NCBI GenBank assembly: GCA_977017575.1
Contig: CDRNVI010000056.1
Location: 62,001-126,000 of the forward strand
Direction of reading: 5' to 3'
DNA from: Paramoeba atlantica
Taxonomy: Eukaryota; Protista; Discosea
Length of the DNA: 64,000 nucleotides
Position numbers and translations under genes: made by a program. Below the pieces are notes generated by a model that made no database searches, was not told the origin of the DNA, and saw only the letters and a program-made list of their open reading frames with translations. This document shows, piece by piece, positions 30,300-61,954 of the stretch (position 1 is the stretch's first letter; the number at the start of each line of letters is the position of its first letter).

Positions 30300-31408
30300 C
30301 GTGCCCCCCTCTAAGAATTTGTCATTGCATCAAAATAAATTTGAGGGGCCCATCGATCTCAGAAGTTCGCCAGCGACGCTCAACCTCTTGTCCCTTGGAG
30401 TGAATAGTTTAACGGGAGAGTTAAATTTTACTCAGCTGCCAAGCTCATTGGAGGACATGGAAGATACAGTTTCTGTACCTTGTTGGTGCTTTTTTCCTAG
30501 CTCATCTTTTCTCTCCCGGAAACGGGCATTTTTTTACAATGTCAATGCCCGTTTCCGGATGGCGCTAGGAGAGGAACTGTCCCTCTTGTCGCAAAGTAGG
30601 GGTGCGCCTCCCTTCCCTCATCTCCCACCACCCAACACGGTTCCGAGTCCCCATGCGCTGCAGGACCCTACTACGGGACCACGCGGCGTGCCTTCACTAT
30701 CCAGCGACACCGGTACTTCTGCGCGTAGGAGGCTTCCATATACCGGAAGTCTCGCACACGGCGAGCAAACACGTTGTATGCGTGTTCTAGAGGATGCCCT
30801 ATGTACCTCTCTTGCTCACCAGCCGCGGCGGACTCTGTGGGACCCCGATACCCATGATGCATCATGAACCATGACTCCATTTGCCAGCATGCATCCATGG
30901 CCCTGAACATGTTGTATCATGAACCATGGAAGTCATTTGTAGCATGTACGATGGGAATACCATCTGCGTCCCACAAATCCGTATGTCTACCCTGGCAGGA
31001 CTACGCTCTCTTCCCGTCTCAGGACATCTTATCCCGATGAAGCCGTTCTTTTCGTTTCCCCAGGATATGCCGCGCTTTTCCCGGTGTCGTAGAGTGAGGC
31101 GACAGGTTCAGCAGGGGGCGCCCTTTGCGTCACCCCTGCTGAGCCCAGTATCTCTACTGGTTTTCGCCCTGTATGAATAAAACTTCATGATGAATCAATT
31201 TCACGGTGTAGTTGACTTAGACCACCTGCCGCGTAATCTGTATTCACTCGAGCTTTCCTTCAAGCCAAATTTGAGTGGTGAGTATCATGCCGAAGAAAAT
31301 GCGAACAAAAGAAAAATTCTTCCCACGATTCAAATACAAGTTGCGCCTCGCGGACGGAGCTCGGTTCAACATCGAAAGCACAGGAATTGTGGAATACTGA
31401 ACAAATGA
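30300..31408 (+). pseudogene. LRR gene (member 5) interrupted by the SL-headed element
   Basis: ...FTQLPSSLEDM before 30460; NQFHGVVDLDHLPRNL resumes after ~31190. Confidence 0.85.
30461..31181 (+). mobile_element. SL-headed element, type A copy 1
   Basis: Starts AAGATACAGTTTCTGTACCTTGTTG|GT and ends CCCTGTATGAATAAA; homologous over its full length to 51347-52062. Confidence 0.88.
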
Positions 31409-45399: not shown

Positions 45400-46121
45400 C
45401 TAGCCCGCTGGAGTTTGTTTTTTTATGCACTTAGTGCAGAGATTTGCCTCACTACATGTCCTTACCCCGCAAGCGACGGGTGGATAACGTGAGGTTTCGC
45501 CTTCGCCGGTGGTAAATCGGTGCAGAGATCTGGCGTCCCATGTATAGAGAGCTCGGTTGTCTTGGGCAGGCGCAGAGGGCCGCGAGTCTCGTCGGCGGAT
45601 GACACGCCTAGTGGTCCTGAGGGGAGGCCACCGTGGCGCATGGCCTCTCCGGAAAGGTAATTGTGAGAGAAGGGGAAGCCGAGAGAGGGAAGCACACTCA
45701 CTCCAGGGGAGTGAGTCGGGAAGGGGTGAATGGGTGGTTCCTCTGCTTCAACAATAGAGAGGGACAGTTTAGGCCTTAGTGCCGGCCGGCAACGGGGATA
45801 GAAATACAGTAAGAGTATGCCCGTTGCCGGGGAAACAAAGGACGTACTAAAGAAAAAGTCCCAACAAGGTACAGAAACTGTATCTTGCATGTCAGACCTA
45901 GCCTTCATAGAAGCTGTATACCCACAGCCCTTTCATTCGTAGGCCTTACTCAATTTGAAAACCCATATTTTACCTCACGGGGGAGGGTCTACGGCATTAT
46001 AGCTTCCGCGAAGCCGATTTATCTATGCATCTGTATCTATCATGGCGAGTAGAGTGTACTTTTAGAGTACGTTCAGTCATTAGTCAGTTAATGCAAACTC
46101 TTCTATTAAAATTGTAAAGTT
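45400..46121 (-). mobile_element. SL-containing element, type B copy 1 (leader + SL core + downstream)
   Basis: SL core at 45862-45886; leader shared with 47975-48254. Confidence 0.75.
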
Positions 46122-46645
46122 CTTCAGCCCCGTTACTTGCGTCACTTCGATGAGAAGCGAGTGGGAAGATGACTCTGGCGCCATTGCTGACAAACGCGAG
46201 ACTGCTTCCCCGAAACAGAGCGCCACATACTGTCGACAAAGTTGCCTAATTCGCCTTGGCAACGGGGAGCAAAGAGAAGGTACGTCGAGAGGCTTGGTAA
46301 GACGCTTCACGCATTAGGTTTGCAAGCTGTAAGTCCTCATCCACCTTTCTTCAGGGAGAATTTCAAGCTCTGTAGCTTGAAGTTTGCCCATCCATCATGT
46401 GCATTTCGTGATTCTAAAACTGTTTGAACGTTCGGTTAAATTAAAGAAAAATTCGGATTACGTTTCCAACTCGATGAGTTCTCATCGAACGGGCGCTCAT
46501 TTGATGAAATCCTCAACGAGCTGGAAATGAACGACTTCGGAGGAAAGTAGTAAAGTTTTATCTCATGGGATTTTTTATAGCTACCTTGGGTTGTGGTGGT
46601 TGCTGGGGATACGACGAGCTCAGCGAAGTGAAAAAGACAGCCCAT
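46121..46645 (-). pseudogene. Degenerate gene; empty-site paralog of the gene interrupted at 51347-52062
   Basis: LPVAK...ATLSTVCGAL.RG is shared with 51190-51340. Confidence 0.6.
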
Positions 46646-47742: not shown

Positions 47743-48254
47743 GGAAAGGTAATTGTGGGAGAAGGGGTAGTCGAGAGAGGGAAGCACACTCACTCCACGG
47801 GAATGAGTCGGGAAGGGGTGAAGGGGTGGTTCCCCTGCTTCAGCAATAGAGAGGGACAGTTTAGGCCTCAGTGCTGGCCGGCAACGGGCATAAGAATTCA
47901 GTACGAGTACGCTCGTTGCCGGGGAAAGAGGGGATGAACTAACGAAAAACAACAAGGTACAGAAACTGTATCTTGCATGTCAGACCTAGCCCTTATAGAA
48001 GCTGTGTACCCACAGGCCTTTCATTCGTAGGCCTTACTCGAATTGAAAAACCATATTTTGCCTCACGGGGGAGGGTCTACGGTAGTATATTAGATTATAT
48101 TAGTATATTATATAGGTAGGTCTACGGTACTATATTATGTAGTTCCGCGAAGCCTATTTATCTACACACCTGTATCTATCAAGGTGAGTAGAGTGTATTG
48201 TTAGAGTACATCCAGTCATTAGTCAGTTAATGGAACCTCTTCTATTGTAAAGTT
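47743..48254 (-). mobile_element. SL-containing element, type B copy 2, 3'-truncated
   Basis: SL core at 47950-47974; highly similar to 45655-46121. Confidence 0.75.
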
Positions 48255-49361: not shown

Positions 49362-50508
49362 CATACCCTGGACGGTAATAGGAGGTAATTACCTCCTATT
49401 ACCTCCTATTACCACATATTTTAGTCTACAGTGTGACTTCTAAAAAGTCTTATGTTATCCTATCTAATTGTGTTCTAAGTGATACAGGGGGCTTTTTTCG
49501 CTACTAAGACAGAGTTTCTGCTTTCTTGTGGCGCAAAATACGATGTTATTTATACATACATACATAATAAATACATAAATAATAAATACATGTAGGTTTA
49601 CCTAGGTTTTTTTCCGTCAGTCTATAATTTGGGTCAACTGCAGTCAAAATGTACCCTAAATTTGTTTTTTCTAAAAACTGTATATTTCCATCACATATGT
49701 GTTCCTTTTTTGTTTTTACGCAAAGCATTTGCATATAAATAAGACGATTTACCGATAATTTCTGCCTCGTCTACAACAAATTCGATAGGTCTTCTGATGA
49801 AAATTCCGATTTTAATAGAACTGAATGGTTTTCATCCACCCCAAGTTCCCGCATCAAAATGAAATATATATGCTTACATCGATTGCCCAGACGTCCGTCA
49901 CGGCAAGTGCATCGAGAACCACCAGGACCAACATAAATAGTGTAGTGGCGGTCAGTGGCACTTTTTATCATATACTTGTGGAATCCCATTTCATCCCTTC
50001 CATATCTGCGTTTGAGTCTTATATGTTCAGTGAGCGCTCGACCTAGTCGCGTGGTTGGGCTTTCATAATCTTCCTGAAGGTCCTCACTAGAGTCACTGGA
50101 AACTTCCGCATCTTCTTCATTTGACTGATCTCCGTATACCGCGCTATTGTCAGAGGAGTATCTCGCCATAACAGTCATAAGGTTCTGAAAACGCTTTTTA
50201 GCTTCCGCCTTGAAGAAGACCGTGCAAATAAAATGCGCTCGTGCCTGACAGCTTTCCAAACTTCTGCCCCATTTGTGAAAAAAACGCTTGCAGTAACCCT
50301 TTACACTGGCATGGGCAGACTCTGCGTTGTTGATATGAATGTTGACGTGCGGGGAGTGCTCTCGCGAGAATGCATCAGCGTGGCAAATAGTGTAATGTCG
50401 GTAAATTTCTGCCCACGTTCTGTCATGGTAATTGGGTAATAGAAAAGTGGTAATTACCACCTATTACCACGCATGTGGTAATTACCACCTATTACCGTCC
50501 AGGGTATG
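49362..50508. mobile_element. TIR element (CATACCCTGGACGGTAATAGG ends) with perfect 6-bp TSD TTAATA
   Basis: 32-bp TIR with one mismatch; TTAATA at 49356-49361 and 50509-50514. Confidence 0.9.
49771..50460 (-). CDS. Cargo ORF: Merlin transposase C-terminal segment fused to a SWIM zinc finger
   Basis: HYTICHADAF...IHINNAESAHASVK followed by YTIYVG...CTCRDG...CKHIYFIL. Confidence 0.65.
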   Translation of the reverse strand: MVITTFLLPNYHDRTWAEIYRHYTICHADAFSREHSPHVNIHINNAESAHASVKGYCKRFFHKWGRSLESCQARAHFICTVFFKAEAKKRFQNLMTVMARYSSDNSAVYGDQSNEEDAEVSSDSSEDLQEDYESPTTRLGRALTEHIRLKRRYGRDEMGFHKYMIKSATDRHYTIYVGPGGSRCTCRDGRLGNRCKHIYFILMRELGVDENHSVLLKSEFSSEDLSNLL

Positions 50509-51189
50509 TTAATACTGTACAAAGCTCAATAAACCTCCCGCGCGTCCGAGAAATATATTATTCCGGGCGGGGCACGAAAACTGACAAGGTCCGCACAAGA
50601 GTTACATTCGCTTAAGTTGTACATTCACTCTGAGAGTTACATTTCACTTAAGAGTGATTTAGATTTACTTAGGAGTACTAATAATTAATTGCATTTTTTT
50701 CATGACATCTGAGTCTTCGGAACTGATTCGCAAGAATGAACGTACGCAAAAACAGGTGAGTTATAGAGTTAAAGTCAGCGCCGGTGGCATACCAAGGCCG
50801 CCTCTGGTGTAATTTCGTTTTGAAAAAAAATTTAAACGAAACACCTACCGGAGAAGATTGTCGTAGAGTCTCAAAAGTTTCACGAACATTTGTCTTTTAT
50901 TAGTGCTCACGTTGGCGCTGTTATCCATTTCGAAGAAAGACTATCTATTATCTGTACCCAATGACTTAAAGAGATGTTGCACATTAATTGCCGTCGGAAC
51001 ACTAAAGCAGAAAGAGGCCGATGGGTATGAAGAATTCTATGGAAGGAATTGCCCTACCTTGCCTTCTAACCTTCTACAGTCTCTCACTGTGTGTCTACCT
51101 CTACAACGCCGGAAACGAACCACAATCCGAAATAGCTATGTAGCGAGCCACAGAATACGACGGAGGATTGTATTCTGGGGGTGGTAGTT

Positions 51190-52440
51190 CTTCAGCCCTA
51201 TTACTTGCGTCACTTTGATGAGAAGCGGATGAGAAGATGACGCTGGCGCCACTGCTGGCAAACGCGAGACGTCTTCCCCTCAACAGAGCGCCACATACGG
51301 TCGACAAAGTCGCCCACTTCACCTTGGCAACGGGGAGTTGTTTGTTCATACAGGGCAGTACCTGTAGAGATAATTAGGTCGAGCCGGGGTAAGCGCAATC
51401 AACGTTCCCTGCTGGACCTTTTCGCCTTCCGAGGCAACACAGGGAAAAGCGCGGGATATCCTCCCCAGGAAAGCGAAAAGAGAAGGCCTCATCGGGATAA
51501 GATGTCCCGAGATGTTTTGTAAGCGCAGTGCGCCAGGAAAAATATACGGATTTGTGGGACGCGGATGATATTCCCATCGTACATGCTACAAATGACTTCC
51601 ATGGTTCATGATACAACATGGTCAGGGCCATGGATGCATGCTGGCAAATGGAGTCATGGTTCATGAAGCATCATGGGTATCGGGGTCCCACAGAATCCGC
51701 CACGGCTGGTGAGCAAGAGAGGTGCATAGAACATCCTCTAGAACACGCATACAACGTGTTTGCTCGCCGTGTGGGAGACTCCCGGTATATGGAAGCCTCC
51801 TACGCGCAGAAGTACCGGTGTCGCCGGATAGTGAAGGCACGCCGCGTGGTCCCGTAGTAGGGTCCTGCAGCGCATGGGGACTCGGAACCGTGTTCCGAGC
51901 GGGGTGCTGGGAGATGAGGGAAGGGAGGCGCACCCCTACTTTGCGACAAGAGGGACAGTTCCTCTCCTAGCGCCATCCGGAAACGGGCATTGGCATTGTA
52001 AAAATATGAGAGAAAAGATGAGCTAGGAAAAAAAAGTACCAACAAGGTACAGAAACTGTATCTTTATTAAAGAGAGGGTCTTTTTGAAGGTACGCTTCAA
52101 GGGCAGCAGTGGCCTCTCCAAGGACGTATGCGCTCCGGGGGCAGATGCTCAGAAACAGATGGCCCCGGCGGTCAAACAAGTGGAACAAGACGCGAGTCAC
52201 GATGCACGAGGTCAAGTCAATGCCACACACAGAGCGTGCAACATGTAAGAAGTTGTCCATCGTACGTGACAGGTACCTTGCAATCTCATCCGTTATCTCC
52301 GCATTGCTTATTTCCAGACGTGGTTTAGAGAAAAGGTTGGGCCTCTTTGTAAAAACCAGGACCGTCAATGCCTTGATGGCATCGAAGAGTTTGTCTTCGG
52401 CACTTGGCTCAGCATCAAGAACAATCAATCGCTCTTGCAA
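51190..52440 (-). pseudogene. Unknown gene split by SL-headed element A2
   Basis: EAYLQKDPLFNK | NKQLPVAK reads in register with the paralog at ~46250-46300. Confidence 0.65.
51347..52062 (-). mobile_element. SL-headed element, type A copy 2, 716 bp, flanked by AATAAA/AACAAA
   Basis: Minus strand reads AATAAA|GATACAGTTTCTGTACCTTGTTG|GTAC...CCCTGTATG|AACAAA. Confidence 0.9.
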
Positions 52441-53290
52441 TGTATCATCACTCTCGATAGATATGCAAAATAAAATTGTATAACTGTATCAAAAGTTGGG
52501 AGAACATTTGATTCCCCCAATTTTTCTCCCAATTTACTTTTTTGGGAGAAAATTTAACAGGAACAAAAAAACACTGTCGATAATAAGAAAGATGAAAAAG
52601 AGTCAGACAAAGAAACATTGGAAAATATCGCTAGAAGTGTACACCGAATTTCAATTTCCACATAAAAATAATGCCGTCCCCCCTATTTACTATTTAGTAC
52701 CCCGCCCCCTCTATTTAGTGTTTAATTTCAAAGCTTCGTAGAAAGGCGCCGATTTCTTTTGTACAACCCCGTTCACGAAAACTGGGATCAACTTCGAAAG
52801 AGCATACCATATTTCAGGCATACTCAGATTACCACAGAGAACACCGAAAAAATAGTGCTGAAGGAAATGGACCATTGTCGCCTGGGTTAGACGCAAAGCT
52901 TTTAGGCCCATGCCACGTTTCTGTACCTTCCTGTTGTTTGAAAATGCTCTTTTGTGGGCCATAGAACGAAAAGGAGGACAGAATGAAGAAGAAAGAACGA
53001 AAACGTGGCCTAACTTCAGAATTTCCCACTTTGAAACATCACGATTTTTTTAACTTTTTAAAAACGCGGGAAACGCATTACAATCACATTATACGTAACT
53101 CTGCGAGAGCTCTTGAACGCGGTACTACTTTCCAAAATTGGCTAAGTTATACGAATTTTGACCCCCTCCCCACATTTTCGTACCCACCCCTGTGTATTTT
53201 ATTTTGGCGCAAAGTATCGCAATTGTTTTTCGTATTTTATTGGGTAAAACTCGTAGTAGTATTTCGCTACACAAATTCTACCTTCTGCAT

Positions 53291-60943: not shown

Positions 60944-61954
60944 TTATGAACTCAAATCAATCTCATCGACTGCGTTAAAATAGTCACGAGAGTCGCTCTG
61001 AGTATGAAATACGTTAGCGTCCATTGGCCCCGTTTTACTAAGCTGCTCGGGAGCTGGATATCGAGAACTCTGATTTTCATGTTTTTCAATGATGTCTTCG
61101 ATTTCCCGGATTTTGTTACATGTTAATGCTTGATATCTACACTTTGCTCCGTGACGATGAAAATTATCAATGTTGTGTACAGTGAGAGCGCAGCAGAAAG
61201 CGTGAAACGACATTTCCGAGTTTCGAGTCCACTGCTTAAACGCCAGAAAACGACCGACATTGACGCGCCCAAATACGTGTTCTATACGAGCACGAAAAAA
61301 AGGAAGGCTTTCGTTTATTTTTAACTTGTCGTGCGCTTTTGTCATATACTCTCTATTGCTCAAACGACTTCGTGAAAATTGTGGCCATATCTGCGATTTG
61401 GAAAATGAAAGTATAACCCTTGTTGTGGCTCCGTTGTAGAACCCTCCGTCTTCAAGAGCACGCAAGCCTTTTCTCTCCAGGAAATTCATCACACCGCAAG
61501 CATCTTGTATGACAGAATCCGACGACGCCCCACAATACAGCGAGTCGCCAACGAAACATAGGTATCCACTCAATATACATGCAACAAACGCTTTAGCTAC
61601 GTGCGTTGAGTATTTGGGTTGATAGCAGTGTGGCAGGTTGTCCACGTATAATGGCACTGTGTCGAATAGCACCTTGACATCCTTATTCCAAAATGGGGTG
61701 GCGTTATTGCCTTCATGAAATAATATGTCATCATCCAAATCTAGCCACGTGTTCTTCATATCGTGGTACATGCGGGAAAAGAATTGTGGGATTTTGTTAG
61801 CACAAGTTCGCTCTCCCCACCCCCTCCCAAATTTCATTGCAAGATATTCTGATATGGTGAAATAATTCCCCCCCGTTCGAAGAAAATAGAAGCTAGCGAA
61901 TACTACGTCTTCTTCATAAAATTGCGATAGAAATTCGTAAGAGTGAAGACTCAA
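60944..61954 (-). CDS. PIF/Harbinger-ISL2EU (DDE_Tnp_4-like) transposase
   Basis: LFDTVP, YQPKYSTHVAK, GASSD, LEDGGFY, N...FRARIEHVFG. Confidence 0.8.
   Translation of the reverse strand: MSLHSYEFLSQFYEEDVVFASFYFLRTGGNYFTISEYLAMKFGRGWGERTCANKIPQFFSRMYHDMKNTWLDLDDDILFHEGNNATPFWNKDVKVLFDTVPLYVDNLPHCYQPKYSTHVAKAFVACILSGYLCFVGDSLYCGASSDSVIQDACGVMNFLERKGLRALEDGGFYNGATTRVILSFSKSQIWPQFSRSRLSNREYMTKAHDKLKINESLPFFRARIEHVFGRVNVGRFLAFKQWTRNSEMSFHAFCCALTVHNIDNFHRHGAKCRYQALTCNKIREIEDIIEKHENQSSRYPAPEQLSKTGPMDANVFHTQSDSRDYFNAVDEIDLSS

Follow-up and report, generated by a model that had tools for sequence, protein, structure and literature searches.

What kind of element interrupts a repeated, open reading frame (ORF)-bearing unit at 51341-52068 of the 64,000-nt stretch of DNA analysed here (the window), and how did it arrive there? 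A sequence-only reading of this place had described a second spliced-leader-headed copy of an element, bounded by a 6-bp duplication of the form AAYAAA and ending in GATACAG...CTGTATG with a 6-bp terminal inverted repeat (ATACAG/CTGTAT). Searching the genome (45.7 Mb, 248 contigs) finds a dispersed repeat of ~0.73 kb at this place, on the minus strand, and reveals full or partial copies, some of them short fragments, on many contigs with 74-98% identity. The motifs named are present as well: the borders AATAAA (52063-52068) and AACAAA (51341-51346), and GATACAG and CTGTATG. Read on the minus strand, 51341-52068 starts AATAAA-GATACAGTTTCTGTACCTTGTTG-GTAC... and closes ...CCCTGTATG-AACAAA. In this study, we assign these motifs differently. 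We consider it probable, with good confidence, that the insert belongs to a small family of non-coding, SINE-like non-LTR retroposons in a kinetoplastid-type genome and was retroposed from an RNA bearing the host spliced leader (SL) by a target-primed process and without duplication of the target. The corrected limits of the copy are 51338-52068 on the minus strand, in place of the earlier figure of 51347-52062 (Table 1).

Table 1. The insertion, its parts, its host unit and a second copy of the family, in window coordinates.
Feature	Position	Strand	Basis
Whole insertion, 731 nt; young subfamily of a probable SL-headed, non-coding, SINE-like retroposon	51338-52068	minus	Limits from nine empty-site paralogs and alignment to 24 other copies
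Head: last 28 nt of the host SL (ATAAAGATACAG...CCTTGTTG), ATAAAG...GTTG, including ATAAA of the left hexamer	52040-52067	minus	String shared up to CCTTGTTG with unrelated elements
Extra A where the SL has G	52068	minus	Empty paralogs and head comparison
Private deletion in the copy under study, without the small CCCGGAAACGGG hairpin	52008-52009	minus	Alignment of copies
3'-terminal hairpin TCTACAGG / CCTGTA(T)GA (supported but not proven), 3' arm containing CTGTAT	51346-51368	minus	Consensus fold of 20 copies
Conserved A-rich 3' tail AACAAACAA, containing AACAAA (51341-51346)	51338-51346	minus	Young copies compared
Upstream flank, part of repeated ORF-bearing unit, ending ...CCTCTCTTT	52069-52568	minus	96% over 500 nt to G000:C30:75579-76078; 78-86% to other longer matches
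Downstream flank, same repeated unit, beginning CTCCCCGTTGCC	51033-51337	minus	Directly continues the upstream flank in empty paralogs
In-window empty-site paralog, truncated host-unit copy, CTCTTT (46271-46276)-G (46270)-CTCCCC (46264-46269)	46118-46300	minus	Sequence comparison
Copy A1, same family, older subfamily, ~88% identical, tail GAATAAAAC	30461-31184	plus	Genome search and copy alignment

The limits can be read directly from the target. The host unit is repeated at least 20 times in the genome and has no match to a Pfam family. In its closest empty paralog, on another contig (G000:C30:75579-76437), the two flanks are contiguous as ...CCTCTCTTT-G-CTCCCCGTTGCC.... In another seven paralogs CTCTTT leads into a short run of pyrimidines, for the most part T and then CTCCCC or CCCCCC; two of these paralogs differ slightly in length, and the junction of L042 is divergent. 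An empty site retaining one AAYAAA had been postulated, yet all nine paralogs, including the in-window one on which that postulate was built (46264-46276), read CTCTTT-(G/T)-C(T/C)CCCC without any AAYAAA. There is no target-site duplication, because the empty paralogs lack this hexamer; the filled site is CTCTTT-[731 nt]-CTCCCC, the insertion comprises all 731 nt, and 0-1 nt of the target was changed. Either one target base (G/T) was lost or it is represented by the extra A at 52068, which may be the target's own base (G/T in the paralogs) or an untemplated or mutated junction base. For the family as a whole, this exact pair of filled and empty sites is known from one site only; another copy, L009, has unique flanks and no allelic empty site.

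The empty site had originally been argued from reading frames. In the frames then chosen the flanks do read EAYLQKDPLF-NK-QLP and the in-window paralog translates as EASYQASRRTFSLLP, and the equal length of 15 residues had been taken to fix the ends of the element. This equality is a coincidence. The in-window paralog carries a 12-nt deletion and unrelated sequence upstream, and in the frame chosen it meets a stop six codons after LLP. The empty paralogs have the open frame ...DPLF-(A/S)P..QGEVG.., which is one base off register compared with NKQLPVAKVKW. In the family register, substitutions at codon positions 1, 2 and 3 number 118/64/93 upstream and 124/69/101 downstream of the insertion site, and only in this register is the pattern the same on both sides. 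The count gives a slight hint that any coding register of the host unit crosses the site without a break, as in the empty paralogs, and perhaps on the opposite strand. The host unit and its closest paralog are 96% identical, less than the insertion and its relatives (about 99%, the closest being L002/L003), and an insertion after the duplication of the host unit would fit this order of similarities.

The surroundings hold other mobile-element-like sequences, so that DNA-transposon-type ORFs and retroposons occur together in the window. Downstream of the host unit, at 49771-50460 on the minus strand, lies an ORF of 229 aa that matches a SWIM zinc finger (E = 1e-4), possibly the remnant of a Mutator-like transposase. 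A Tc1/mariner-type transposase ORF (HTH_Tnp_Tc3_2, DDE_3) occupies 804-1721 on the plus strand, and an ORF at 60944-61954 on the minus strand matches DDE_Tnp_4 weakly, below the Pfam cutoff.

Of the two hexamers that had been read as a duplication, the right one belongs to the 3' end of the element, and the left one supplies ATAAA to its SL head. The downstream flanks differ among nine independent insertions of the young subfamily; of these insertions, eight end in ...CCCTGTATGAACAAACAA (tail GAACAAACAA) and the ninth differs by a single A-to-G. The second subfamily ends in ...CCCTGCATGAAAAAACA and the third in ...CCCTGTATGAATAAAAC, with GAAAAAACA or GAATAAAAC as tails. Within each subfamily the 3' end is fixed, and sequence varies only beyond the tail. 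AACAAA is accordingly part of a conserved tail that runs 3 nt further, to 51338, which places the 3' junction 9-10 nt beyond CTGTATG. In composition the tail is short, conserved and heteropolymeric (GAACAAACAA, GAAAAAACA or GAATAAAAC), not poly(A). The sequence-only reading had left room for the A-rich hexamer being a tail or a recombination core rather than a true duplication. As a tail this is right for the right hexamer, the left one being leader sequence. In two independent insertions (L006 and L013/L014) TTAGG(C/A)A directly follows the tail, perhaps by chance, perhaps because they share a target or have a longer variant of the tail.

Just inside the tail, the consensus fold of 20 copies predicts a small hairpin. 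At one of its pairs 14 copies have A-U and 6 have G-C, both sides having changed; we count this as one event since the six G-C copies all belong to subfamily 2. In that subfamily the 3' arm reads CTGCAT, the SL head is still ATACAG, and local pairing is kept while the match between the two ends is broken. The supposed terminal inverted repeat thus dissolves into SL sequence (ATACAG) and the arm of a local hairpin (CTGTAT). At about 20 sites a sister family, which includes the "type B" element at 45415-45443 of the window, also has a hairpin here: TCTCT and ATGAAnAAA flank it as well, and its stem differs (GCAC/GTGC). Folding of single sequences is not significant (z = -1.3 for the hairpin, about -1 to -2), and some copies offer competing pairings; the 3' hairpin is supported but not proven.

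Two type B copies lie in the window on the minus strand (45415-46107 and 47743-48246); in these, a leader of ~230 nt precedes an internal SL fragment (AGATACAG...CCTTGTTG). One of them, at 45415-46107, ends TCTCTGCAC-TAA-GTGCAT-A-rich, resembling the tail of the SL-headed family, and lies 10 nt downstream of the truncated host-unit paralog. A type B tail is also found just past the paralog at C30:80528-81295 (C30:81771).

The identity of the head rests on its recurrence in front of unrelated sequences. The string up to CCTTGTTG heads the unrelated elements L031 and L032 and a second element in L016, and divergence sets in immediately after it, as expected for an SL exon. A 22-mer of this string, GATAAAGATACAGTTTCTGTAC, occurs 707 times in the genome. 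A longer form precedes the unrelated body of L031, where an A-run is followed by AACTAAC, TTTAAC and then GATAAAGATACAGTTTCTGTACCTTGTTG. The core CAGTTTCTGTAC is the conserved kinetoplastid SL core. The SL as used here is defined from element heads only. A pattern search of the assembly for the full SL followed by GT found no locus, and the SL RNA gene array seems either to be absent from the assembly or to differ from the SL inferred from the heads. The junction between SL and body, TTG/GTAC, has no AG acceptor in any copy, and an exact-pattern search of the assembly found no SL-less locus with an AG acceptor before the body.

Some loci combine these parts in other ways. In L016 (G000:C34) the second SL-headed element lies about 150 nt downstream of a family copy; it has the head GATAAAG...CCTTGTTG and an unrelated body, and apparently ends about 1.2 kb on in a TCTCTGCAC-TATAA-GTGCATGAAAAAA tail (C34:81258-81284). 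L004/L005/L008 and L021/L022 represent two independent insertions from two subfamilies that share a palindrome-containing leader of ~100 nt, 78% identical. It is joined at CTCAG/TTTC and replaces the 5' part of the SL; these loci could be source-type copies or 5' chimeras.

At its 5' side the family has no fixed end. Copies start at query positions 1, 2, 5, 9, 10, 11, 14, 15, 16, 23, 61, 86, 136 and 143. The SL part measures about 35 nt in L016, is a variant in L017, spans about 24-25 nt in A1 and 28 nt in others, and some copies are truncated further. Copy A1 had been seen to end in AATAAA without the hexamer on the left; it lacks ATAAA there because it is truncated 3-4 nt further within the SL than the copy under study. 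A start at ATAAAG after a non-SL base is also found in L018, L019/L020 (ATAAAA) and L026. Together with L001 these make four independent copies that begin exactly 28 nt from the SL 3' end, preceded by the non-SL bases A, T, A and T, respectively, and reverse transcription may have a preferred stopping point at this place in the leader. The small CCCGGAAACGGG hairpin missing from the copy under study is present in the other copies that cover the region.

Tabulating junctions was the check that the sequence-only reading had itself put forward. In other copies they are heterogeneous (query positions 1 to 143 on the 5' side) and not centred on GATACAG and CTGTATG, so that the claim of a duplication and of those ends fails by the standard which that reading had set for itself. 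Across 18 independent copies the best match between the two flanks of a copy averages 2.39 nt, compared with 2.05 nt for mismatched pairs in which the 5' flank of one copy was combined with the 3' flank of another. A 6-nt match is reached by one copy only, in a C-run. Some young copies appear by eye to sit in pyrimidine-rich targets; this is inconsistent, and we do not claim a target preference.

The family is small and has been active recently. A first-look count of 504 candidates overestimates its size, for the 3' motif occurs at 40 sites genome-wide and the last 120 nt match at only 38. We put it at ~40 genomic sites, haplotype and segmental duplicates counted in, many sites being near-identical pairs on two contigs (haplotigs or segmental duplicates). 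Three or more subfamilies are separated by diagnostic changes, including changes in tail and hairpin, at 86-99% identity. Young copies at different loci are 97-99% identical to each other, and the copy under study stands in the same relation to them. Coding signal is absent: the element has stops in all six reading frames, the differences between subfamily consensus sequences fall 22/21/22 on the codon positions without periodicity, and neither an ORF nor a Pfam domain was found in it. An Rfam scan of the element gave no match at E <= 0.1 and a tRNA scan none; the same scans of the whole window returned nothing meaningful, and a search of a phage collection, irrelevant for a eukaryote, no match. 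Subfamilies hardly differ in the central third of the body, about 240-420 nt into its aligned part (CCTAGCTC), and differ most in the 3' third; the central segment may be under constraint, for example as a promoter or protein-binding site.

Taken as a non-autonomous non-LTR retroposon, the family is short, non-coding, dispersed and multi-copy with subfamilies, and it has a constant 3' end with variable 5' truncation; a target-site duplication is absent. As a canonical SINE it lacks a head derived from a Pol III gene (tRNA, 7SL, 5S) with internal promoter and has 28 nt of SL exon instead. As in a processed retrocopy of a trans-spliced RNA, the 5' end of the copy carries an SL that ends exactly at the exon boundary (CCTTGTTG); the poly(A) tail of such a retrocopy is lacking. 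The SL is added to RNA and is not encoded upstream of genes. An SL fragment ending at the exon boundary therefore argues for reverse transcription of an SL-bearing RNA, the more so as the dispersed heads vary in length.

We propose the following course of events. The element RNA would carry the host SL at its 5' end and a short hairpin with A-rich tail (GAACAAACAA) at its 3' end, the hairpin presumably being the handle for the enzyme. A LINE would provide the reverse transcriptase in trans, and this enzyme would copy the RNA from a nicked chromosomal target (target-primed reverse transcription), and copying would usually halt inside the leader, here 28 nt from its end, giving rise to variable 5' ends. 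Joining of the second strand would be nearly flush, leaving no target-site duplication and, here, a change of 0-1 nt of target. Target-primed reverse transcription by a LINE enzyme in trans has just this signature, a fixed 3' end with a hairpin and a specific tail, and 5' ends that vary. Given the missing duplication, the second strand was presumably cut nearly flush, as by R2-like (restriction-like endonuclease, RLE) LINEs; some LINE classes, for example the R2-like ones, also make no duplications. Among the mechanisms offered by the sequence-only reading, LINE retroposition fits, with an RLE enzyme as one possibility, and integration by a tyrosine recombinase (YR) and a Dada-like DNA transposon do not.

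A partner LINE was sought among reverse transcriptase (RT) loci. Thirty RT loci gave no match to the element by BLAST, to the tail pattern or to the covariance model R1, loci that are centred on the RT and probably fall short of LINE 3' ends. A PF00078 search gave scores for 150 RT places out of 1851 candidates. Of the tail sites genome-wide, none lies a few kb downstream of these 150 places except, loosely, C69:325027, which is an ordinary family copy and was rejected as the tail of a partner LINE. On a broader and distinctly tentative view, the family would stand for a class of SINE-like retroposons without Pol III head that obtain a capped 5' end from host trans-splicing. The 28-nt stop would then be the point at which something in the leader, such as a modified base or a bound protein, blocks the reverse transcriptase, and integration would be near-flush, duplication-free and R2-like, recognising a minimal hairpin with A-rich tail.

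A trans-spliced non-coding host RNA from one or a few source genes might also have been copied repeatedly by LINE enzymes into daughters that are dead on arrival and do not propagate. We regard this as unlikely, even though the SL lengths differ between copies (24-35 nt) as if a full SL were freshly added to each template RNA, daughters without an AG acceptor at TTG/GTAC could not be re-spliced at the same place, and about 40 sites make a small family. The exact-pattern search for a source locus that lacks the SL but has an AG acceptor before the body came back empty. Moreover, at least three subfamilies with diagnostic changes suggest several successive masters, as in true SINEs, and a conserved hairpin with a specific tail in place of poly(A) resembles the handle of a dedicated enzyme.

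That the copy is a non-autonomous derivative of a YR retroelement, as SIRE is of VIPER, whose circle would integrate at an A-rich core AAYAAA without duplication, is very improbable. The missing duplication and the A-rich hexamers at both borders of the copy under study agree with it. However, the left ATAAA is SL sequence that is missing from copies truncated a few nt further, the empty site contains no AAYAAA core, and a circle integrated by recombination should leave both ends constant, where the family has variable 5' and fixed 3' ends. Least probable of all is a cut-and-paste, Dada-like DNA transposon with 6-bp terminal inverted repeats (TIRs; ATACAG/CTGTAT) and a 6-bp duplication, a model that we consider refuted. 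It can draw on a single copy, in which 6 nt near the ends are reverse-complementary and the borders bear similar hexamers. Its 5' arm is host SL sequence; its 3' arm pairs with the neighbouring TACAGG, and both changed together (CTGCAT) in subfamily 2, with ATACAG unchanged in the SL head. The 3' end of the element lies 9-10 nt past CTGTATG, no TIRs are conserved at its true ends, its 5' ends are truncated at many positions, and there is no duplication, of fixed length or otherwise. The target is a repeated ORF-like unit and not a small-RNA gene.

Retroposition from an SL-bearing RNA thus remains our preferred reading, and known systems show where the family stands. Stringent-type LINE/SINE pairs such as UnaL2/UnaSINE1 of fish share a 3' hairpin-and-tail. 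Like UnaSINE1, the family is short and non-coding; a small hairpin and a short specific tail form its constant 3' end, and it shows variable 5' truncation, subfamilies and recent bursts. Unlike UnaSINE1, it is headed by part of the host trans-spliced leader instead of a Pol III gene and makes no target-site duplication. The element works like a stringent-type SINE in which these two classical features, the Pol III-derived head and the duplication, are lacking. SIRE/VIPER of Trypanosoma cruzi is likewise a short, dispersed, non-coding kinetoplastid repeat without obvious duplication. SIRE shares both termini with VIPER and its ends are constant, whereas the 5' ends here are heterogeneous, and what had passed for "termini" is a piece of the SL on one side and a hairpin tail on the other. 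RIME, NARTc and SIDER (ingi/L1Tc group) resemble the family as short non-coding retroposons of the kinetoplastid lineage mobilised in trans by LINEs; their duplications are 12 bp long. They carry the 77-nt Pr77 hallmark at the 5' end, poly(A) tails and duplications (PMC12278014, PMC8190864). The family begins with SL sequence, ends in a hairpin and a heteropolymeric A-rich tail, and makes no duplication; it is outside this group, from which the absence of poly(A) and of duplication sets it apart.

CRE/SLACS/CZAR are site-specific LINEs of SL RNA genes (PMC12278014). They share with the family the kinetoplastid host and the association with the SL, and their restriction-like endonuclease is compatible with near-flush insertion. 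They are, however, coding and occupy one fixed position inside SL RNA genes, with SL gene sequence on both sides; the family has SL only at its own 5' end, flanks unrelated to SL genes and no ORF. It is a member neither of this group nor of the SIRE/VIPER or Dada groups. In dinoflagellates, SL relics are found at the 5' end of retrocopied genes, as one-off retrogenes (PMC5585692), and in Hydra transposon transcripts are trans-spliced according to RNA-level evidence (PMC12220107). These cases have in common with ours a trans-spliced RNA as template or product of mobile-element expression, but here a multi-copy, non-coding mobile family carries the SL relic as its regular head. A limited literature search found no report of SL-headed SINE-like families in kinetoplastids, and PMC12278014 lists only CRE, INGI, TATE and VIPER.

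These results remove a false lead, namely the duplication and the inverted repeats together with the recombinase and DNA-transposon models built on them. What is gained are the true limits of the family and its first exact pair of a filled and an empty site. They raise the questions of what stops the enzyme 28 nt from the end of the leader and how the leader-bearing template is regenerated. For the biology of the organism, the locus provides clean evidence that leader-bearing RNAs are reverse-transcribed into a free-living-type kinetoplastid genome by an enzyme that leaves no duplication.
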